From Pocillopora damicornis (Eukaryota), in the NCBI RefSeq assembly GCF_003704095.1, contig NW_020846062.1, positions 62,001 to 126,000 on the forward strand: 64,000 bases of DNA, read 5' to 3'. The notes under the pieces are model-generated. The model saw nothing but the letters and a program-made list of their open reading frames with translations. It searched no databases and was not told where the DNA came from. Positions 3,101 through 52,700 of this stretch are shown here, in pieces (the first letter of the stretch is position 1; every line of letters starts with the position of its first letter). Made by a program: the position numbers and the translations under genes.

Positions 3101-4753
3101 ATTGTGTATAACACAGATCTTTGCTTGGTGTTTAGACGGTTGGTGATGACTCAGGTTTCTCAAAACAATCCAGAGAACCGTTGCGTCTACATAAATTTGC
3201 TATCCTAAACACTGCCACTTAATTATACATTCACGACACCGAATTTACATTTGAGACAAGGTCGCCGTCTTTGTTGTTACGGGCTGCGCGAGTTTAAACA
3301 AAGAAACAGCTTCTTTCTCACAGTGCACTACGTTAAACATACGATCTCAACAAAAAAGCCCTAATCCTGTGTTCCCACTGAGAAAGGAAACAGCGAAATT
3401 TTAATGTCATCTCTTGAATATACTGAGAAAAAAAATCATTTTGATTTTTGCAACCAAAAAAAATCAAGTGATGACGTGTTTCTAAGAATACATTTTACAG
3501 TAAATTCCATTTTAATAATGTTTTGAAAAGCACATTTGAAAAGTTTCTGATTCAAGATTTGTGAGGAAAGCGTAATTATCTAATCTACGAAAGTAACATT
3601 TTCCCTACATGATAGAAAAGAAATACAATAAATGTCACAACACAAGAACACTCATGATGAAATCATGCGGGACTCATCAGATTCCATCTGCAAATCTTTA
3701 AGAACGAAAGGACAGAAAAGGCAATTTCAAAGCAACAGTGACGCGCTGCAGGGATTTCAATGACGAAGAACTTTCGGAACAATGTGTTTTGAAAAAGAGA
3801 ATCTCTAAAGCAGATTTCATTTTAAGAGGCCTACAAATAAAAATACGAACAAAAGAATTATGCTTTTATTTCCTCGCTTGCTAACATCTCTTTTCACATT
3901 GGTCCGTCCTTTGTATTTTGATTCCAGTAATGTAAAATAATTAGCAAGGTTATTCTTTTGCCAAATATAACCAAACAAATAAAGCGCCTCGATGGAAACC
4001 ATGCTGAGCGGTCCGTGGGAATTAACCTCCAAAATTCAACAACTTTGATTCTATACCTTCACATCAAAAAATTACCAAAAACCAAATTAGCTTGTTTACA
4101 AGACTGTCTTCATAAATTAACACCATTGAATATTTTGTTGTAAAGAGAGCATGAAGTAGCATCGCTGTACGTGATGTTCGAATCATCTTTCCCTCTTCCA
4201 GTGTTTTTTAGACTTTAGTCGTGTATATTTACAGAAGAGCACTATAAGAAGGCCTTGACAGTTTCTTCCTTAACAACAAACGCAAACGTGAGAAAATACA
4301 TCAGTTCTTGACAAATCGAAATTTTGCCGGATTTCCCAAGGAAATGCCAGTTATATAAGGACACAATTAAAAAAACAAAACAAAACCAAAAAAACAACAT
4401 TTTCAGCATTATTTTCTGTTCATGGCCCCCCTCTATTTTCATGTATTTTATCCAAAAATTTGACCCTTGAAAAGGATCGGACAAAGATACAAGAAAAACT
4501 TTGGATCTAGTACAAGAGGAGAATGTAAGTGCACGTGCCGACTGGAAAACAGCAAAGTAAACAACTGATGTCTGATGGGTCAACATCACATTTATGTCAC
4601 CTCAAAATACGGAGACTTTGGCGTTTTTTTCTTTCCCGCTCGAGTACTAACCAAATGAGTTGACTTAAAATTCGAAATACTTACAATAATTGTAATGATG
4701 ATAATGATAATGAAAATAAGAACAATAATAATAATGGCAATAATAATAATGGC

Positions 4754-4787
<34 letters not shown>

Positions 4788-7700
4788 TCTCTAATAATAG
4801 TAATAATAATAATAATGATATCTCTCCTCTCCACACTTTAATATACTATTTATTGTATAATTTCTTTTTATTTCTCATAATACAACTGACGATGGATGAT
4901 ATTTCATCCGAAACATGTTTTGTTTTCATTAAAAAATTTAAAAAATGAACTTCAAAAGCGTCGTGNNNNNNNNNNNNNNNNNNNNNNNNNNNNNNNNNNN
5001 NNNNNNNNNNNNNNNNNNNNNNNNNNNNNNNNNNNNNNNNNNNNNNNNNNNNNNNNNNNNNNNNNNNNNNNNNNNNNNNNNNNNNNNNNNNNNNNNNNNN
5101 NNNNNNNNNNNNNNNNNNNNNNNNNNNNNNATGAAGTTGCAAAGTTTCACGCGGAAATGGAGTAACAAAGTGAAAGAATATTTTAAAGGCACTACATTAC
5201 GGTTTGTTTATCCTTAAAATTCAGCTTATCTTATTTTCACGCTCGTCAATTTCCATTTGCAATCCGTTTCAATCTTCTTCATCTTCAGCTTACCTACTTC
5301 TTTCAAGGTGTACTGCTGTCTCTTCTTTGTTCCTTATCTAACTGAACTAATACTTTGAAGTCACTGTAACGGCGCAAAAAATGTCCCATAGAATCTTACT
5401 TACAGAGGCCCCTTAGACTTCTAACTTTCTGTGAAAGCCTCACCTTTATCTTCTCAATCTCCTCCTGGATCTTTTCAGGCTCCGCTCCGAATGCACGCTG
5501 GGTATTCAGTTTGTCTTCAATTTTAGAAATCACTTCTGACAGGTTTTGTAAGGCATCATGGAAATCGTCCGCCAGAGGCGCAACATTTTCCAAGCTTCTC
5601 CGTCGGTCCGCGGTCCTATCCACGATGCTGCTCAAGGCTTCGGTCACGTGATTCACCTCTCTGGAAAGTTCCTCTTTGTCGCCAGGTTGCGCAGTTTCAA
5701 CCAGGACCTCGCTGACTTTGGTGAAGTTTTCAATGATTGGTGCTCGATCAGCGATTTCGTTTTCAATGTCCTACGAGAAAAAGGGAGGGATCTTTTTAAA
5801 AACTTGTGGTGTTTTTCTCACCTTAAAAATATTAGAAATTTTACATATGGAAATAAAAGGAATGAAAGTATTTCTATGCAGTTATCATTTCCCACGTAAG
5901 TGATTTAAGGATTCAGTGAAGTTAGACGCTAACAGGTAGAATTTTTATGAACAGATTAGAATCAAATGATCAATAACTGTGCATTTTGTTATTGCTCGTC
6001 CTAAAAGTTGTTTGTAATGAAAATATCAGATTGTAATCCTCATACTCGAAAAGGAATCCCGTTTTATGAACTTTTAAAAAGTTTAATTTTATCGTTGGTT
6101 ATGACTGTTACCCTCGTGAACGCGTTTAAAAATAAACACAGCCGAGTATCAGTCATTTAAACGCTACTATTAGATTCTCTCGTTAACAGCGACTGTATTT
6201 AATTCAGCTGCAAACAAATGAGGAAAGAAGTCGAAAAATAAATGAAATCTTGAAAATCACAGGTTCATATTAGATTTACAAAACTTTTACGAGTATGAGT
6301 TGGCTCAATAAGAAGATCAAGAAATGAATGATATTAGCTACGGTTAAAGCATATATGTAAAAAGGAAACTGATATAAACATGACAAACAAGATGTAACAG
6401 TAATAGAAAGGGATGTAAAGTGAAAATAATTTGTGATGTGAGAACAAAGTAAAAGATGAAGGTTGCACGAATACAAGCTGAAACCAAGTAAAAGAAATAA
6501 TTAGCTGCAAGGAAAAAAGTAAACATAGACGAAGCAAATACATGAAATGAGTAACTGAATTGAAAGTACGTGTAGCGGCAAGATCATAAACACGACTGCT
6601 AGAATTGGCCAGAAGTACGCGAGTAAGATGTGGAGGCTTCCTTAGAAGTGCACAGTGGAGGTATGATTCATCAGAAAACAATCACTACATAGCCGACATA
6701 CACTGATAACGGACAAAACAACAAGGTTATTACATATACATAAAACATCAGTATTAGATATGTGGTGCTAACATAACATGCAAATTGTGTAGTACATTAA
6801 TCAATTTTTGATCATCAATGGAATAGGACGCGTCAAATCACATTGCAGATACCTCAGAGTGAACTTTGAACTAACGCAACTACAGTGATAGATGGTGCGA
6901 TAAGCAAAAGGCATAGATGAACCAAGATAGCTTCAAATGAAGCCACAATTTACTTGCTCCTAATTTCATTTTTATCAAACGTCCATGCAAATTTTATTTT
7001 ATTAGCAATAAATAGGTTTTTATTACAGTCTATCTTGTTTACAGATTATCATATTTAGGATCGCATCTCAGTGTAGTTCCAAGTTTTTCCAAGGTTGACT
7101 TTCTCGTTACGCATGCAAGCAATGACAACAAATCTTGTTTAAAGAGGTTTAGCAGAGGTAGAGAGAAAAGAGCCAGAAATGGCCTCATGGCCGATATCCA
7201 CAAGCACCCTGCAAATTACTCGGCATACAATGTTCATGCAATTCCCATCATGCAAATCAACAAATATTCTGCGTGAGAGGAATACCTTGATTTCTTGCAA
7301 TTGCGTCTTGATTTCATCCACTTTCCACGAAACGGCCCTCATCCAGCTCAACTTTTTCAAAGTTGTGAGCATCCACTGCAGGAAATTCTCCAGAACAAAA
7401 TTAAACCGCATGTGTCTTGAGCTGTAGATGAAGATCAACGATTTGTGCTCCAATACATATTGATAAAGTGTTTCAATAACGACAAGGTAACGTTGTACGA
7501 CGGTTGTTTGGTATGGAATGGACACTCGCCGGGAAGATGTAAGCTCAGCTTGATTAAAGACAGCGGATTCAGGTGTGATTGTTTCCACAGTTTCAGTTTC
7601 CTCATATGGAACCACTTCCTCTACTGGCCTTTGCATTCCGATCGTCCCTTCAACACTTCCATGATGCACAGTTCTTGTCACTGTTCGTGTCACAACTCTT

Positions 7701-10700
7701 CTGATCCGTACACCGTGTTCGTCAACATACTCTTCAAATTCTTCTGGCGCGTCATGTTCTGTGTGGGATACAGGTAGCTCTATTGTTGTTGGTGCAACAT
7801 CTTCTGTCTCGAGATAAACAGGTGCCGCCGACTCAAATACCTTTGTACCCAAATCTTTTTTCTGTTCGTCGCCAGATTTACGTATTATACTTGTGGTTGT
7901 GACGGTGCGTCTCACACGAACACCATTTTCATCAACATATTCTTCAACTTCTTCTGGTGATTCACCTCCTGTTTGCGGTAAAGTAAGTCCAACCTCTATA
8001 GGTTCAATCTGTTGGCCTTTTCTTTTTATACTGGTTGTAGTGACAACACGTCTCACACTTCTCCTTACGCGAACTCCATTTTCATCAATATACTCCTCAA
8101 CTTCTTCTGGTGATTCATCTCCTGTTTGCGGTAAATAAAGTCCAACCTCTTCAGGTTCAATCTGCTGGCCTTCTCTATTTATACTGGTTGTAGTGACAAC
8201 ACGTCTCACACTTCTCCTTACGCGAACTCCANNNNNNNNNNNNNNNNNNNNNNNNNNNNNNNNNNNNNNNNNNNNNNNNNNNNNNNNNNNNNNNNNNNNN
8301 NNNNNNNNNNNNNNNNNNNNNNNNNNNNNNNTTTCATCGATATATTCTTCGACTTGTTCCGGTGATCCATCTCCTGTTTGCGCTATAGAAAACTCAACTT
8401 TCTCTGGTTCAAACTGCTGTCTCCTTATACCAGTTGTAGTAACATAACGTCTCACAATTCTCCTAACACGAACACCATTTTCATCGAGATATTCTTCAAC
8501 CTCCTCTGGTGACTCTTCCTCCGTTCTATCATCTGGTGAAGGGACCAAATCGTGATAGACAGGTGCCGCTGATTCAAACACTTGGGGTCCTCCGTCATCT
8601 TTATTTTCGTCAATCGCCTTTGGTGACTGGTCATCTGTTTTCGTTGGCAGTAAATTGGATTGTGGAATCTCCTCAAACGATGAACTCAACTCAGGAATTA
8701 TCACTTTTTTCTCGAAGTGCACAGAAAACACGTTTTCTTTAACTTCTGGCCTTTCTTCTGGCTCGCCTCTTTCATCCTCGTCTCCAACTTCCATTCCAGA
8801 CTCCGCAGGTAGTTTGGGTGACGGCATATCGGATTCTTCTTCCGACGGGAACGCAACGGTAACAGGTTGTAATGTTCCTTTCAACTGAGTCGTGAAAACT
8901 GATTTTCTGAGCTTCTGTGTGCGACGACCAGCATCGGAGGCAATCATCACTATCTGTTCTCCTTCCTCGGGATCTTCTCTAAGCTTGGAATCATCGACAT
9001 CATCAGGTTTCAGGACAACCTTCATTGATCCATCTCGCAGCACTGTTTTCATTGTAGTGGTATGAGAAGTGCGCATTACTCTTGTTATCCGTTGTCCGTG
9101 CTCGTCTGTGTACTCCTGTACCTCTTCTTTTGGCTCAGGAGGGATATCGACATCCATTTCCAAGTCGGGCATCTGACGTTCTACTCGTAGTATTGTCTTG
9201 GTGGTCGTTAATTTAGCAATTCTCTTTACCTGACGTCCGTCTTCATCAACGTATTCCTCGATGACTTCTTCATCAGGATCATCACTTTTATCTACCGAAC
9301 TCTGCAATGAAATACTTACCTCGCCTGGTTCCTCTTCCAAGTAAACAGGTTGTGCTGATTCAAACACGACCGTCTCCCCATCGTTGTCCTCGTAATCTTC
9401 TTCGTCAGAAGAGGCGCCAAGAAGAGGCCTTCCCCATTCAAATTCTTCCTGTTTAGTCTCTGGTCTAGATTTACTTGGGACTTCAAAGTTTAAACTTTCA
9501 ACGGTGCCCATTTCGACGGCTGTAACTCCAAAGGGAGACTTATCTTCCACTCTCCCATCACTATCAGAACTTTTTGCCACTGGTTTCCCTAATTCAAACG
9601 GTCTGGGTGAAAGGAGTACGTTAGTTCTTTCAGCAGCAGGTTCCGTTTTCCCAGATTTAGGAACTTCAAATGTATCAAGGAGATTCTTTTTGACTGTGGT
9701 GACCTTAAAGGGACGGGAAGAATCGCTCTCTGTTGGAGATTCATCATCCTAAAGATACAATGAAATACCGTGCGGGTCAATTAACTCCAAAGATGATAAA
9801 GCTACTTCGCTCAACTGATGGAGATATCTCTTTAATGACCGGCTAGTCAGGTGACCTAATGGTCACATCCAATTAATTGATGATGGTGTAAATTCTCACT
9901 GCCTGGCTGTTTGACAAACTATCAAACTTGTGAAGAGAATTTATGCCTCAATGATCACTTCAAGTCGTGAAAAGTCGATAAATTGTGAAGAAACTCTGCT
10001 ACATCCAATATTTTTATACTTTTTCCAATGTGTCCTTTAATTTCCGTCGCGATAGGTAAATAAAATTGCCTCTTCAGATTTAATTTGCATACAAAACTGA
10101 ATACAAATTAGCCCCACGACAACCTAGAAAAATTTCGCAAAGTTTAATAATAGGCCATTCAAATATGTGGATAAGCTGTTGATTGCTAAAAATTAAGTCT
10201 CATTAAGGTTTCAATTGTCCTCAAATACTGCATCTCAGATCAGTCCTCACAAGCAATTAGAATACAGCCGCGGGGCCAAAGCGACGCGTAGCAAACACAT
10301 GGAAGTGATAATTGTCCACATCTTTTCGCAGTTTTTCATGGGCAATACAGACGGAGTTGATTTGATGCTGTACATACATTACCTAACTATCAATATTACA
10401 CTGCGAAATATTACTACCATCAACATATTAAAAATTGGAAGTTCTCAGATATGTATCGCTTCTAATAGACCGAACAATATAGTTTTTCGAACAGTCTACT
10501 CACAACTACAGAGGTGATGGTAAATCAGTCGTAATAAATAGAATACTGGCAATTAAGAGACAGAAACTAGTACATTTTTTCCTGAATACGACATCACCTG
10601 ATCCTTGCCGCACTATAATTTGTGCATTGTTTGGGTTAGTGATATTAGCACTCGCACATACAAATTTCATTAACTCGCGTGTTCAAAATACAAACCAAGA

Positions 10701-13700
10701 ATTCAACCTACAAAATATCTTCTAAAAACAGGCCGAAAAACTAACCAGCCCCCTGATTTTCATCAGTCGATGTGCCAAGACACTAACTACATTTATGCTA
10801 AACATTCCAAGATAAACCATCCGTGTCTCAGGGTGTTAACATATCTGTCTCTTTAAGAATAAGTTTAGAGATCAACTCACATCTTGTTTGCGCCGTCTAA
10901 ACAAGCCAAAAACTCGTCCCACAGCAGTCACAACGGGATTCATTTGGACTGTGGCTAAGAAGCTGAATTCAGCGACCGATCATGCTTGTCAATAACGAAT
11001 AATTACCCCAAGAGATTCGTGCTAAATTGTTCAACCAGAACTGTTCCCGCACAATATTGCGGAGCGAGTGTTTACCGACACAAAGTGATTGGGCGTTTGA
11101 AAAAACAACAGAATTAAAATATTCGTCAATGTTCAGAAAAGTGTTCAAGGAAACGGACGATAAATGAACAAGCAGCTGACGGGCCTTAAATAACATTACA
11201 GTAACCTCGTAACACAAATTTATGCATTCCTTCTACACGTTCTTAAGACACCTTAAGAACAATAACAGCCAAAAGAAAACAGTGTCAATTGTAGTTTCTA
11301 ATCACGTTCATCTTTTCTCTCAATGACTAAAAATAGTCTAGATCCTTCCTTTTCGCGGAATACACGCAGAATACTAAGCAACCATGATCCTTTCCAGGCT
11401 CGTACCCAAGGGTTACTTCCCACCTTCAGAGGCCGAAAAAATCGATTTTTCTTCTATTTGACTAAACTGAAATTCAAACATTCAACCTAACGTTCCCGTA
11501 AAAAAAGGATCTGAAATCTATCTGAAAGTACCCAAGTTATTTATAAAAACGTATTTTCAAATCAGTTAATAAATCAGGAAGATGTCATAACTTGGGCGAG
11601 TGCCCTGGGGGAATTTTCGCGGCAACCGCTCATGTTGGGGCTCGATTTTCATCTTATTTCCATATATTGTTTACATCACGCACTTTACAAAATTCATACG
11701 TGGAAGCTCTTTGTTTATGGGAAAATCTTTGCTCGTGGAAAAATAAAAATCGGAAGAAAGTCCTTGGGAAAAAAAGAAAAAAAAACAGGCCCCAAGAAGA
11801 AAGAAAGGGTACCATTCTGTCAAGAAAAGAAAAAAAATCCTTTGTTAAAGTAACTGAGGGAACTCCACGCTGGCGTCCAGATTTCGAACAAAGAAGTCGC
11901 CGCCAAACCAAAATTTGCCATACATGAGGGTCATTATTGTGTCGTCCTCCTCAACGCTTCCCTGAGCGATCGAGAAAAAAAAGGGGGGCTTGAATGGGTT
12001 ACTTTTCCCACGAAATCTTTATCATCGTCATTGACGCCAGGAGGTCTCGTTGTCCTATTAGTTTGCGGTTTCAGGAGGCGAGATAATCTCCTAGCGTGGC
12101 GCGAGTTGTTGGCGAACCTTTAAAAACTAAAATCTCGTATATGATGTTGGGAGGATAACAACCACTTTAAGCAAATTTATAGGGTATATAGATTTGACCC
12201 ATTCTCGTAAAATTTCGCCGAAACATCCTAGGAGTAATGACAAACGAAAGTGTGTCGGAAAATTTTGATATTTGAAATATTTGTCCCGTAGCTTCCATTT
12301 ACGCAAAACGAGTCGCATATTTTTAGCTACTCCAACTTTAGATGCCGATATCTACACAACCAATCAGAATATCGAAAAAGCCTGACACACTTTGTTGGTT
12401 GATGCCTTGTGAATGAGAATATGTAGCCATTTTGCTCGTGCTGCATCATCCGATACCCAATAAATTCAATAGAACCTTCGGTCGTTTCACGCCTTACCGG
12501 CTCCTAACGCTTCCTTAAGAGAAAAGTCGCTTAAATTATATTTTTATGGTAAAATGTTTTATTAAGCTTTCTCCTGATATATAGTTTGCTAGGATTTTAG
12601 TAAAACTAGCGCGCGTACGAATTTTTTCCCGAAGGATACCCGCGAAGGTGGGAAGTAACCCTAAACTTTTACCCAGTGCTTTTCGATTTCAGAGAGACAA
12701 ATCTTTATTTATTCCTAGAACAAGAATATCATTCTCAAATTCCACTCGATCAGCTGATGCTACACACTAAGCACTATCAAATAGTGATCATACAGATCTG
12801 GGTAATGACACGATAAACTTAAGGGAGACACTCCTCCCTGGCACTTGGAAAGGAAGCTCACCTATGCCCGGCTCCACAAATTGGCATCAAACGTGACATT
12901 TCCAGCGTGACGTCCACTTCTCTTGGGCATCATTTCACTTCTCTATACGTTAATATGACAACTGCACTTACCTCGGCACGGTTGTTTTCGCTACAGGAAC
13001 AAGTTTACGTGAAAACGATAGTGTGAAATGTGAGACGTGGAGCATGAAACGTGAATAGAATGAAATGTGATGCGTGAACTGTGATGTGTGAACCGTGACG
13101 AGCGACGCGAAAGGAATTTCTTTCCGGACTTACCTTGAATTCAAAACGATTTTTTAGCTCCAGCAACTGAGTTTGGAGTTGATCCCACTGTTTGTTAACT
13201 CCGGTCACCTTATCGACGACACTCCTTGGGTCCTGTTCTGTATCCTCCAGATGTCTTATCACTTCCTGCCCTGACTCATTGGTGTTGGCCAGCTGGTATT
13301 TCAGACTGGATATTTCGTGATTTAAGGCCTATTTAAACAAAACAAACAAAAATTGAGTTAAACAATTTTAAAATATGTTTGGGATAATAAAAAACAGTAA
13401 AATAATGAAAAGGTGCATAGGTGCTTTAGACTGCGGAAAATGAGGAAATTTAGATTTCTTTGAACACATCAGTCGAAAAGCTCTCAAAAGGACTAAGTCG
13501 ATGACACAGATTACCATGAATGAGGTAGTTACAAATGTACTAGCCAATTATTTAGTTCTTAAAGCTAGTAACATAGCGACGGCTAAGAAACTGTTTAAAG
13601 TTTAACCACGTTTCCCCGGGAATTCAACTGCTCGCCACGTTTTTCACTTCCTTTGAGAAATAGTTCTTGAACCAATCTTGCTACTTCAAACCCTTCTTTT

Positions 13701-31700: not shown

Positions 31701-34700
31701 TGATCTTCACTTGCGTAAAAACTTGTTCTTTGCTTAGGGCTTGCTTTAAATTCCAGTGTCTTGTTCTCCACAATGTCAGTAAATGTTTATACTGAATTTC
31801 TAACCTGGTGAAATAGAAAAAAATAATACTGTAACAGTACTGGAGAAAAACCTATCTTTAAAGGCTGCCAAAAGTGATAAATGAGATTGAATTATTGATA
31901 TTTTATTCGTCTGTTTTAATTAAATTGTGATATATTTTTTTATAATTTCTTCTCAGACAATTTGTACAGACCACCATCAGGTTGATACAGAAATATTTCT
32001 TTCTACAGGTCAAATTCTTGGTTAGTCAGAAGGTAATATTTTCTGATCCAACACAAAGAGTCCACATGAATGAATGTGGCTGTGACCATAACCTTTCTAT
32101 ATTTTACATCTCAATACAAGACGCTCTTCCTTACCAAACAGAGCACATGCAAAATCCAAGTTTTTCTATGTTGAAGGTTAAAATATGTGACCATTACCTG
32201 GTGGAAAATTCTGTAGCTTCCACATCTGGAGCAGGAATAACAAAACATACGGATGGAACTTCACACTGTCTACTGCTGGCATTTGTAATCTGTCAAAGAG
32301 TACAACAATTTTCATTAAAAAAAGAACAGATATGGTGATCCATCTGTTTTTATCTACATGCCTTATTTGTCTTGTCTGTCTGTCTATTCAGGGTAGTCAT
32401 TAGAAAATGTAAAAGATGCACAATCTGAACTAAGTAGACAGCTGAATTGAATTCTGCTTGCCAAGCATTTGCATTGCACCTTTCTTTGAGGGGTTGAGGG
32501 GCATGCTCCACATTTTTTAGCAAGACATTGATGTTGCAATCAGTAAAATTTACTTCTTTTCAGTTTTTATCCAAATTCACAAGGTAGCCAGCAGGTTTTT
32601 GCCTCTGACCGCCTTCTAATGACAATCCTGCTGCCTGTACATCTGTCTGTGAACAATGTGTCCCTCTTGTTTATTTACCTGTTGATCATTGATTGTTTGT
32701 TGGTTTCTCTTACTGTCTACATACTTTGATTGTTGATTAGTCAGCCACACAGCTTGTATGTGTTTTACTGTTTGTATGTTGGTTCTCAGAAGATCTTGAT
32801 CACTGCTTTAGATTTAACTCAAAGTAGTTATTTCAGCAATAATACATACTTTCCAAGAATGATGCTCAGAATTATCCAGGAGTAGACATTCTTCACCTTT
32901 GTTGACAACATTCTGAAAAGCAAATTAAATAGCACACCATGTGTTAATAATAGGCCATCTAATGGCAAAAGAAATCCCAAATTTCTAACAAAATCAAGTT
33001 TATCACCAAATAGTAAGTGTTTGAGAAAAATACTTAATAACCCAGCTGTGTAGAACTTAGGCTAGGAACTTCAAACAGAAGTCACAAATTCCAATCACTG
33101 CATCAAAAAGTGCCCGCCATTCTTACCTGCATATTCTTGTAACTGCACACTGGATCAACCAAAACTTTGCCCTTCAATTTGGATTTTCTTTGTGGCAGGG
33201 GAACTACCTTTTTACTCAGAAGTTGCAATGAGCTAACAACATCTTTGAAGTCAACAAGTTCTTGCTTCATTTCCTACAAGAAATTTTAAAATAACTTTAC
33301 ATTTAATAAAGACCTAAGGAAACCCTGAGGAAAATAAAAAAAAATTGAAGGATCTTAGCACAATCAATTTGCATGGTAACTTGTTGCATAAAACATGACA
33401 ATACTGTCACATTTTGGAACATGCTATAGAATCCTGTGATCAATGAGTTGTCACAGGCAAAGTTGACTGAAGAGGTATACCTCTGCTTTGAGTAGGATTT
33501 TCCAGTTGAGACACCTGTATTAAATTAGTACCTTACATTTAAGGGCACACCAGGTTATTTTGTCATTAAGATTGTCACTTTGTCTGGACAACTGAGGAGG
33601 TTATAGACTTAGAACCTTCATAGCAGGACCCCTTCTCTAGTAGTAGTAGTAGCTCGTCAAAATACAACCAACATGTAAAATATTCTGCAATACCATTCAC
33701 CAAAATGTCTAATGAGTTTTTCTTTTTTAATCATTCAATTAATTTACTTCATATGTATTTCTCCTAAGATAGGGAGAGCAAAGCAATAGAGAAGTGAATT
33801 GTAGTCCTAATATTTGTACTTGATTTACACATTCTTTGTACTCTTAATTAAACAGTTGGCTAATAAAAGCTTATCGTAAAAATAGGCTAAACAGTGTAGA
33901 TATCTTAGGTGGAATTTAATTCTCAGAACCAGCATTACAAGTGAAAAGATAAAAGGTAAAATCACTCGGGATCAGATAAAACTGCAAGGAAAAATACTAA
34001 CAAAGAAATACTGAGGTGAATGTGTGAGATTAAGGCAAGAAAAGCAATAAATCAGTTATTGACAGACAACAAACTAGGGCCAGTAATAAGGGGACTGGAT
34101 TATATTGCTGATTGTCATCTATGGCACTCCACCCCCTCAGTCATTAATCTGACATGATCAAATATTCTTATATGATCAAACATTCTTGTATGATCAAATA
34201 TTCTGGAGTGATCAAATATTCTGGTATGATCAAATATTCTGATGAAAGCTAACATGTGGAAAGAAATCTGATAAAACTTGGTTATGTTAAAAGTGCAAAA
34301 GGAAAAGCTGTTCTTCTACTTATAAGATAACATAACATTCTTTGAGGAATTATCTTCAAAATGACAATAGGTAATATAATAATTGAGCAGAACTTTCTTA
34401 CTGCAGAACTTTCTTACTGCAGAACTTTCTTACTGCAGAACTTTCTTATTGCAGAACTTTCTTATTGCAGAACTTTCTTATTGCAGAACTTTCCTTTTGA
34501 AGTCATGCCTGATTAACTTTTGATATACAGAGGAAACATATGCCTGATGAAACATGAACAGAAGGTAGGAGGAGGGAATGATTGAGATGCTGACACTCTT
34601 GTTCAAGTCTGACACCATCTGTAATCCACTATTATCATAATTGTCAGTGATCATGCATATTGTGCACAGTTAACCCTTTGAGAGTGACTAGTATTTAATT

Positions 34701-49700: not shown

Positions 49701-52700
49701 CTGGGGAGAAACACTTGATCTCCTCAACTCCTACTACTTTGCTGCACACCATAACAAAAGAAAAGTCTCTTCAGTAAAAGTCGTGAACAAAAACATACAA
49801 ATGCTGAGTTTTGTTCCCCTCTATTTCCTTTGTGTTATTATTTACTTTTTTCCCCCAACATAAATGGTTGTAAATCAAAGGAAAGATGCTTAGTTGATAG
49901 TAAATGCACAAATTAACTTTTCCTCCAAACCTTTATTCCATGGATAGTCTTTGGGAATCTCTGTTTCTCCATTTTTTGCTCCACTTTGTTGATCTCCACA
50001 ACTAGAGCTTTTGCCAAGTTACAATATTCTTCAAACTTGAAAAGCTTTTCCTGAATATAGATAAATCACAGGAAATGAAATTTGACTCAAATAAAGAATA
50101 GATTAAAGCAAAAATACTTAAATGGTCAGCTTCGTTCATTTTTTCGGGTTCAAATCCATAAAAAAAATTAATAAGAAATTGAGAGAGAACTCGACATCAC
50201 ATTAACAAGGATGCTTACATTATCCTGCAATGACTCTTGTACTGTTGGCTCTTTTGGAAATACTTCATACAAGGAAGATACATATGTCATGATAGATTTT
50301 TCATCTGGTTGTTCGGTATTTGCGAGATCTAGAACAGAAATCATAACAGGTTCACAGTCATGCATACAGAAATTTACTTACAATGCATTCATATCCATAC
50401 GGTGTGCAATATTTAACGTAAAAGTTTAAGTTAAGTTTTTTCCCTTGCCCAGGAAAATACCCATTTGCTAGTTACCACAATCCATTCTGACAATTTGACA
50501 CAATTCATGTGGATGGACAAGTGAAGACAATAGCTCAATCTAACTATCTTCCAGTATCTTATCAGGATTTACCAGCAGTTCTCTGTTATCTCTTTATACT
50601 CCTGAGCTAAGGTGATCAGAGCATTGTTATCACTTACCCAAAGTTATGTGCGGCACTATGCAGCTTACCCTGAATTAGTGATGATTTAGTTTTAAACAAC
50701 TAAACTGAGAAGAACACAAGGAAAGTTCAGATCACAATGCTCTAGCCAGAACTCAAGCCCAGAGCTTTCATTCCCACAAATCCAACCAGCAATTCCCACC
50801 AATTCATCCAGCAAACTTCTCCAGCAACTGGTGCTTAACAACAATTCTGAGTGGTTGACCTTCCTGATAGCAAATTGAACCTGAACATTTAGTGATTTAT
50901 TTTACCTTCCACATCTAAGAGTCTTGGAACACCAAGTTCTTTCTCAGCCACATGAAATGAATACTCCAGGTTTTGATCAGGGCTTGCTTTATTCAACTTG
51001 GAGAAGTCTACAAGATCTGGCCTGTTGTTGGAAAAAACAATCACAATTCCATGATATTTCTATTAAAGACCATAAATTCACAAATCACATTTGACTGAAA
51101 TTTATGTGCCTGACAAAAATCAAACTAAACCCTCTTTGTTACACAAATTAAAACATTTAAGATACCTGTATCTGTGAATAATTGCATTGAAAGCCAGCCC
51201 ATCTCTCCATGAAGTTGTAAAGTTTCCAACATCAACTGAAGGATAACTGAAAACAGAAAGAAACACAATATATTCTTTTCACTTTGCTTCTCAGCAGCAT
51301 TTTAAGCTCAGCATCATAGAAAATGTTTTAGGGAAAGTTACATGTTTATCACTTCTGGGAGTTAAAGGATTAAGTAAAAGCAAGCAATTTGTATGATGCA
51401 CAGAATAACAATGGAAACTGAATGGCAGTTGCTCTTTTTCAGCTCATGATAACTAACTAGTTGGAAAAGGAATTTGTGTTTTAAGGAACAATAATGGAGC
51501 ATAGTAAAGCCAAATCAGTCTGTGAAATCCCACTTTGGACACTTAACCCTTTAACTCCCAGAAGTGATTCACATGCAATTTCTCCCTTCAATATCCATCC
51601 ACTATTCAGGAAACAGGTAATGAGAGTAATCAAATGTATTAGATAGAAGTTGTTATCTTGATCTAACACCAAATTCTTGCAACCAATTGACAATGAAACG
51701 GGAAGCAGCTAGAGGGGAGAATTAATAATCAGATCTTGGGAGTTAAAGGGTTAATTGCAAACTGCTCTTATCATCTCAGCACTTACCCCTGAGTTACTTT
51801 CTTTGCCCACAGAAGAAGAGCATCTTTAGCTGTCATCTGCTCCTGTTTTCCCACAACTTCCACCTCTGAAATCTGTAATTATACCATTACATAACAATAA
51901 TTGTAAAGAAACATGGACATACATGCATTTAGTCTGGAACTGGACTGAAATATAATTTTTCTGCTAAGATGTTCAAAAGAATCCTACAAGCTATCAACAA
52001 AGTAAGGGAAGCTTACTTTTTCAAGAGGCAATGGAACAGTTTTATTTTGAAACCAGTCAGAATTATTCAAATTTATTTACCTATTTAAGAATTAACAGAC
52101 ATAAAATAAATACATGGTTTATTGTCTGACCTGGTAGTGTAAGATAATTGTCCATATCAGACCCAGGGTAAGCTTGGGATTACCATCCACTATGTCCTCA
52201 CTACGAATGTTCACCAGTTTCACCTGAAACAAAATATTCGTTAGCTTAAGCTTTGTAGGACATGAGGGGTAACATTGGGTAAAGAAATCTTTCAAACCTG
52301 TTACTCCCTAACATCAGTATGCATATTCTCTATGCTGTTATATATCAATTTCCTAAGGTTCTGACAAGGAGAATTTGTTTAACTATCACAAGCTTCTTTT
52401 TTCCGGTGATCATTCCCTTTATTCTAATAAACTTGATGTGTGATTCAGGGGTGATATTATAAAGAGAACCTACAATAGATTTTTGCTACTCTTCAGGATC
52501 AAAGGGTTAGGAAACTTGCAGGAAAGATTGAGGTGTTCATGAAAACTGTGGTTTAGTTGGAGCTCAGTTTCAAACTAAGCAGGCAGATGCAGATCCATGC
52601 AATGTAGTTGAACAAACACACATCTTGTTTTAAGAATATATAGGCTGATTTACAGGGAGAAAATCATCCTCAAGACTTATGATTATAATTAATCCTCAAG

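Follow-up and report, generated by a model that had tools for sequence, protein, structure and literature searches.

Spectraplakins are the main actin-microtubule cross-linkers of animals, and in their bilaterian members a plakin-repeat region, which binds intermediate filaments, is located between the plakin domain and the spectrin-repeat rod. We know of no other large insert at this place in a spectraplakin. What, then, occupies it in a cnidarian? The question is raised by a 64,000-nucleotide stretch of the Pocillopora damicornis genome (NCBI RefSeq assembly GCF_003704095.1, contig NW_020846062.1, positions 62,001 to 126,000 of the forward strand), hereafter the window, whose minus strand bears a large exon filled with copies of a short charged motif. 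An initial annotation, made from the letters of the window, described this as a giant rod exon of a spectraplakin with motifs resembling the ankyrin obscurin-binding motif. We report here that this coral spectraplakin exon is real, coding and expressed, and that it carries a cnidarian-specific repeat between the plakin domain and the spectrin rod. The description of the exon and of its repeats is near certain, while the docking mechanism proposed for them is one that we infer. Judging from the sequence searches, cnidarians fill the bilaterian plakin-repeat slot with a different, undescribed repeat module. This module gives experimenters a way to ask what non-bilaterian spectraplakins are linked to, and its 51-residue unit is a defined peptide with which binding and structure can be studied in Nematostella. 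A tempting connection with muscle ankyrin-obscurin biology, which lacks support, falls away.

Limits, splicing and expression of the repeat exon

The exon and its neighbours in the transcript are as follows (positions are those of the window).

9748..7286, minus strand: whole coding exon, 2463 nucleotides as assembled including a 100-N gap, 821 codons (RNA contigs)
13134..13328, minus strand: end of the upstream exon (..NRFEFK, then GTAAGT), a spectrin-repeat exon of the plakin domain (PF00435, E 0.0011); only its 3' end, at 13134, is fixed
5399..5770, minus strand: downstream exon, a spectrin repeat, beginning at 5770 after TCGTAG (PF00435, E 3.8e-7); only its 5' end, at 5770, is fixed
7286..7510, minus strand: last ~75 codons of the repeat exon, conserved in all orthologs

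RNA contigs from four polyA RNA-seq runs of three studies, labelled coral or marine metagenome, cover 7285-9750 except for the tandem array. The loose end of the contigs at 9750 maps to window position 13136 onward, in the upstream exon, and that at 7285 maps to 5746-5767, in the downstream exon. The repeat exon is spliced in polyA mRNA to the flanking spectrin-repeat exons, and the membership in the spectraplakin mRNA on which the initial annotation had made its reading depend is borne out by these joins. The exon is bounded by the acceptor TTTAG|GAT and the donor AAG|GTATTC, has phase 0 at both ends, and lies in a reading frame that is open from 9748 down to 7142. The repeats do stand within 7660-9280, the span first assigned to the exon, but the exon itself is larger, as the RNA contigs show. 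An intron at about 7450, inside the open frame, was considered and ruled out because the RNA contigs pass there without a break. The final ~75 codons, for which Pfam gives no match, may be the start of the first spectrin repeat of the rod.

In one of the runs (X2), a single contig extends from the exon into the upstream intron (window 9734-10115). Its depth is low (3.2, where the exon has 15.8), a pattern expected of unspliced RNA or of DNA carried over into the library.

The host gene

By its domain matches, the host gene of the repeat exon is a spectraplakin, as the initial annotation had proposed. Exons for CH domains, a plakin-type SH3 domain and spectrin repeats all lie on the minus strand of the window, and a GAS2/GAR exon lies on the same contig and strand. 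The matches were made exon by exon.

52122-52307, minus strand: CH (PF00307), E 1.2e-5
50892-51059, minus strand: CH (PF00307), E 2.5e-4; both CH matches are exon fragments that score just under the whole-protein cut-off
33106-33273, minus strand: SH3_10 (PF17902), plakin-type SH3, E 7.6e-4
15681-16019 and 13008-13328, minus strand: spectrin repeats of the plakin domain (Pfam, per exon)
G000:C2697:7508-7627, minus strand, ~54 kb downstream of the window's start: GAS2/GAR (PF02187), 67.6 bits; assigned to the spectraplakin gene by shared contig and strand

Tandem CH domains, a plakin domain with SH3, a spectrin rod and a C-terminal GAR, the elements by which a spectraplakin is recognized, are all found, and a published survey reports a true spectraplakin in another coral, Stylophora (PMC9145010). 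The layout from CH through plakin and spectrin to GAR is shared with bilaterian spectraplakins, as is the presence of a large repeat segment between plakin domain and spectrin rod (MACF1b, Drosophila Shot and Caenorhabditis elegans VAB-10A); the coral segment here is a single exon. The segments differ in their units, since the coral unit is a charged motif of 22-30 residues whereas a plakin repeat has 38 residues and is folded into a globular domain. Unlike the bilaterian plakin-repeat exon, the coral exon has no Pfam match to plakin (plectin) repeats (PF00681), and the 234-Mb assembly gave 0 matches to this family, a weak negative because the controls of the search gave no signal either. This absence agrees with the literature, according to which the plakin-repeat module originated within Bilateria (PMC9145010), and with the initial annotation, which had set the exon apart from the known giant exons on the same ground.

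Motif copies and the tandem array

The motif follows the consensus EEVEE[YF][VI]DExG[VR]RV[RK]R[IV]V[KR]RTxTT and comprises 22-30 residues, in which an acidic part (EEVEE[YF][VI]DE) is followed by a G-centred turn (xG) and a basic, beta-branched part ([VR]RV[RK]R[IV]V[KR]RTxTT). As assembled, the exon holds six complete copies, two half copies cut by the gap, which read ..EEYIDE before it and GVRVRR.. after it, and one degenerate copy. The regular expression [EQ]E[YF].DE[NHDQ]G has six matches in the six-frame translation of the window, all in one minus-strand frame (7735-9259), which confirms the tandem motif copies of the initial annotation and places none elsewhere in the window. The repeat region is highly charged, with 21% acidic and 12% basic residues, and has no cysteine. 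The features within the exon, all on the minus strand except the gap, which has none, are:

9341..9367, minus strand: VFESAxPVY copy 1, conserved in orthologs
9167..9277, minus strand: motif copy 1, isolated, orthologous across corals (own-genome profile match, E 1.5e-13)
9026..9136, minus strand: motif copy 2, isolated, orthologous across corals (own-genome profile match, E 1.4e-13)
8873..8962, minus strand: degenerate motif copy (alignment of orthologous N-terminal regions)
8555..8581, minus strand: VFESAxPVY copy 2
8405..8515, minus strand: motif copy 3, the first and more diverged array unit (profile E 4.1e-16)
8333..8365, minus strand: motif copy 4, N-terminal half only, cut by the gap (profile 17.9 bits)
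8232..8331, no strand: assembly gap, 100-N placeholder, inside the tandem array (window letters)
8114..8230, minus strand: motif copy 5, C-terminal half and linker, directly after the gap (profile 28.6 bits)
8006..8116, minus strand: motif copy 6, complete 51-residue array unit, the best own-genome match (E 2.8e-17)
7917..8231, minus strand: 153-bp tandem array below the gap, 2.1 copies, 92% matches (Tandem Repeats Finder)
7865..7963, minus strand: motif copy 7, last array unit, basic strand 4 residues shorter (profile and translation)
7814..7840, minus strand: VFESAxPVY copy 3
7643..7753, minus strand: motif copy 8, isolated, terminal (profile E 2.1e-14)

The degenerate copy is recognizable because its block is conserved in orthologs. 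Tandem Repeats Finder recovers the central copies as the 153-bp array that had been read from the letters; this array stops at the gap, and beyond it the unit at 8332-8518 shows greater divergence. Three copies of another recurring motif, VFESAxPVY, are present in the exon; the initial annotation does not list them.

VFESAxPVY usually stands ahead of grouped hairpin motifs, and other corals have it within a higher-order unit of ~140 residues together with ..DVVPSVQTREVVLPEWMVE.. and ..ESVTATTLNREIVIPEI.. blocks, both of which are absent from the P. damicornis exon. Near the exon start, a non-repeat block, FEWGRPLLG[GA]SSDEEDY (window 9400-9480, minus strand), is strongly conserved in all coral orthologs.

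The upstream flank of the gap ends after base 1 of an Asn codon (..D-E-N-G..) and its downstream flank begins with base 3 of that codon; because both break within the equivalent Asn codon, the flanks stand at the same position of the repeat unit, and the true gap length must therefore be 1 mod 3 for the frame to stay open, which the 100-N placeholder happens to satisfy. None of the listed contigs of the polyA runs bridges the gap, and contigs from two runs extend into it from the 8332 side. From the codon phases, in-frame continuity across the gap is plausible. Relative to the unique parts of the same exon, the array has an RNA word depth (summed contig depth) raised ~3- to 16-fold (125-240 versus 12-17 in run X1 and 55-158 versus 11-12 in run X10), and this elevation suggests that the true number of units exceeds the three to four assembled, as a rough estimate given that contig depths are coarse and the runs possibly derive from other individuals. 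An open reading frame (ORF) of 457 residues from ENA (P0002), 97% identical to the stretch of the window after the gap, has its start within the array; its 51-residue units outnumber those that the window has after the gap by at least two.

Relatives and conservation of the repeat

With the exon as query, a word search turned up 15 ORFs of exon size in coral-type assemblies, which have N-terminal blocks, motif copies and the C-terminal tail in common with the window exon; the tail is likewise present in P0002-P0031. In addition, we built a profile of 37 positions (A2) from 21 motif copies and searched 1.84 billion representative proteins with it, which yielded 42 proteins at E<=1e-3. Apart from one chance match these are cnidarian or cnidarian-like, and those with a known placement belong either to the same spectraplakin exon region or to a small paralog family; short unnamed ORFs with one or two motif copies are also among them. 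The exception, P0037, was rejected as a false positive, in which the string QEFFDEHGRRP is repeated in a homing-endonuclease-associated repeat protein.

The clearest counterpart outside corals is A7SF37_NEMVE from the sea anemone Nematostella vectensis, a protein of 3258 residues, annotated only as predicted or uncharacterised, that has 27 matched motif stretches followed by spectrin repeats. In another N. vectensis protein, EDO29015, the motif region stands immediately after plakin-domain repeats. Two distant orthologs on cnidarian-type contigs (L023 and L025) have upstream exons collinear with the window exons 17071-14924, and their motif region is split over several exons. The number of motifs per ORF varies from one or two in some to 20, and exceeds 30 in one coral across further ORFs.

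In that coral (L030:3001-8652, the P0001 locus), the 51-residue array spans three successive ORFs with more than 30 units; the contig is a long-read one, and assembly errors may account for the breaks between the ORFs. At L025:12265-14343, and in P0025, a longer unit of 96-102 residues (the motif plus ..KNGVKTVTKEPKEEVVYVIDGKPVEPE..) is expanded to at least 13 copies.

Conservation of the motif reaches from stony corals to a sea anemone. Counted from the aromatic residue, positions -3 to +18 hold 2-4 bits each across 253 distinct copies, whereas the linkers hold ~1 bit; the consensus is V-E-E-[YF]-[VIT]-D-E-[NQ]-G-[VR]-R-V-[RK]-R-[IV]-[VI]-[KR]-R-T-[IV]-T-T, with E, [YF], D, G and V near-invariant. 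By this measure, positional conservation is far beyond the needs of a charge pattern.

The same motif is found in a small paralog family that is not spectraplakin (P0032, P0033, P0035 and the P. damicornis locus C3436:464122-465615, minus strand, also L017:1122-2615). The last is the sole other motif locus in a profile scan of the coral's own genome: a 498-codon exon with two motif copies, ..PEWM.. and acidic ..EEEIVVLEVRRKPR.. modules. Both modules stand inside the spectraplakin exon in other corals, and they recur in a neighbouring, divergently oriented gene (C3436:471326-472264, plus strand, also L017:8326-9264). The C3436:464122-465615 exon begins with ..CLRWCCPCCLRG, and the P0032 and P0033 ORFs of other corals begin with MKAC[LI]RWCCPCC, a start whose letters suggest a cluster of N-terminal cysteines that would serve as a lipid anchor.

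Searches for a described family were negative: Pfam-A has no family match for the repeat exon, a PDB sequence search with the motif profile gave nothing below E 0.9, a full-text literature search for motif strings returned chance matches only, and no paper describing the repeat was found in the literature. Judged by these searches, the repeat is an undescribed cnidarian module that belongs to no described family. Several faint candidates were discarded. Pfam runs on the exon and its orthologs gave summed hits only (Hormone_3, EspA and others) with 0 stretches each, which are spurious; PF27288 (Alr2735) was a precomputed faint match only; and the ESM Atlas look-alikes of P0029 (best score 0.77) were unnamed arthropod clusters that gave no lead.

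Predicted structure

The initial annotation had pictured each motif as a beta-hairpin, a claim that stands in part. AlphaFold2 draws a hairpin at every motif, but for the window's post-gap stretch (14-row alignment) it does so with a mean predicted local distance difference test score (pLDDT) of 30 and no confident fold. Confidence is moderate for a longer unit, of 96 residues, from a distant ortholog, with a mean pLDDT of 73 that rises above 80 over the motif. In its model, a short acidic strand leads through a turn into a basic strand of 17 residues, and a second long strand completes a three-stranded meander. A Foldseek search of the PDB with this model gave no match (TM<=0.21). From these models, a beta-hairpin is plausible for the P. 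damicornis units.

Comparison with the ankyrin obscurin-binding motif

The ankyrin obscurin/titin-binding-related domain (C-termini of sAnk1.5, ankyrin-B and ankyrin-G) likewise has a short motif, acidic first and then basic, whose core is EE[YF]xDExG..V, and, like the coral array, is built of tandem duplicated modules (two to three) within a cytoskeletal adaptor (PMC2942773). According to a 2011 title cited in PMC11774597, it also binds filamin C and plectin, the latter a plakin. It can be asked whether the coral motif is homologous to this domain, or acts like it by docking an obscurin-like or titin-like partner.

For this comparison we used two 19-mers quoted, with unverified letters, in the initial annotation, one from ankyrin-B and one from sAnk1.5. 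Each was scored against the coral profile together with 5000 shuffles of the same letters, and the proteome-scale E values are our own arithmetic from HMMER P-values.

ankyrin-B 19-mer: 15.1 bits, reached by 0 of 5000 shuffles, E ~0.4 per 1.1e7-residue (human-sized) proteome
sAnk1.5 19-mer: 8.1 bits, reached by 5 of 5000 shuffles, E ~56 per 1.1e7-residue (human-sized) proteome

Both peptides, with the caveat on their origin, share the core E-E-[YF]-x-D-E-x-G-x-x-V with the coral motif and outscore nearly all of their shuffles, which means that residue order matters. Against kinship, a score of 15 bits corresponds to E ~0.4 in a proteome of human size, and one of 8 bits is noise; the profile built from the repeats, a check proposed in the initial annotation, found no ankyrin at E<=1e-3 among its 42 matches in 1.84 billion proteins; and a word search at E<=10 with an alignment of the P0029 family, the most ankyrin-like subfamily, gave 22 matches, all relatives of the query family and none of them an ankyrin. 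The coral does have an ankyrin-like gene, with ZU5 and UPA_2 exons on C211, but a scan of the 30 kb that follow its UPA and death-domain exons did not find the motif (best score 6.7 bits). The basic half differs as well, being RVRRIVKRTITT in the coral and K-rich (..VVKKVTRK..) in the quoted ankyrin peptide, and the host is a spectraplakin rather than the C-terminal regulatory domain of an ankyrin. To our knowledge, obscurin's ankyrin-binding tail is also vertebrate-only. The ankyrin module itself is described as vertebrate-specific, having arisen after the split from urochordates (PMC2942773).

The initial annotation had let its case turn on significant profile similarity to ankyrin motifs beyond composition: significance fails, yet the likeness does exceed composition. 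At the level of the letters compared, there is a real resemblance to the ankyrin motif, but a short one; neither homology nor obscurin docking by the repeat region is supported, and we consider a homologous or ankyrin-like motif improbable. It would be a long shot, too, that the motif, in the spectraplakin repeat region as in the small proteins that begin with a cysteine cluster, is an ancient, portable cnidarian docking hairpin sharing ancestry or binding mode with the vertebrate module. If true, the 'vertebrate-specific' ankyrin module, with its binding of obscurin, titin, plectin and filamin C, would have a pre-bilaterian relative in a plakin-family protein.

Proposed function of the repeat region

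We contend, with odds that we put at slightly better than even, that the repeat region is a multivalent beta-hairpin docking or self-associating platform. Each motif would be a hairpin-prone unit within an otherwise flexible chain, the array would add binding sites to the cross-linker, and its copy number could shift easily through unequal exchange in the 153-bp array. A portable, multivalent interaction unit is suggested by the positional conservation, by the orthologous single copies and by the reuse in non-rod paralogs; that small non-spectraplakin proteins carry the motif as two copies argues for a portable interaction module. Several points weigh against this proposal. The repeat has no Pfam, PDB or fold match; the window's own units reach a pLDDT of only 30, from a shallow 14-row alignment; the exon, of phase 0/0, may be constitutive or a cassette; and the block-charged make-up suits a passive elastic spacer equally well.

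Such a spacer, in which block-polyampholyte repeats act as an extensible, electrostatically zipped mechanical element leading from the plakin domain to the rod, is possible although rather unlikely in our view. Acidic and basic blocks alternate in each 51-residue unit, with no cysteine and few aromatics, AlphaFold confidence is low for the window's units, copy number is very variable among species, and the region stands in series with the spectrin-repeat rod. It would then be akin to titin PEVK/poly-E segments, which are likewise repetitive, charged, of low complexity, in series with a modular rod and variable in length, and what varies with copy number would be the length and compliance of the segment, not how many binding sites it has, an idea that we hold just as tentatively. 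The PEVK segments of titin, however, have ~70% or more P, E, V and K in modules of 26-28 residues, whereas in the coral these residues make up only 38% and the 51-residue unit is rich in R and T, with strongly conserved motif positions and with beta-hairpins predicted instead of a polyproline coil. Composition is all that a spring requires; it has no need of near-invariant [YF], D and G held in place through 253 copies, nor does a spring explain the motif as just two copies in small non-rod paralogs. That the repeats have no specific function and expanded neutrally in a linker that tolerates them seems very improbable to us: the central array, whose units are 92% identical, is young and lies at an assembly gap, and species differ widely in copy number, but the motif and the non-repeated blocks are conserved from stony corals to a sea anemone and in paralogs, the frame is open over 821 codons, and the exon is present in mRNA.

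Other features of the window

Just downstream of the spectrin exon at 5399-5770 lies a second assembly gap, of 165 N (window 4966-5130), which probably sits in an intron. An A/T-rich simple repeat, reading as poly-Ile, is located at window 4595-4837.

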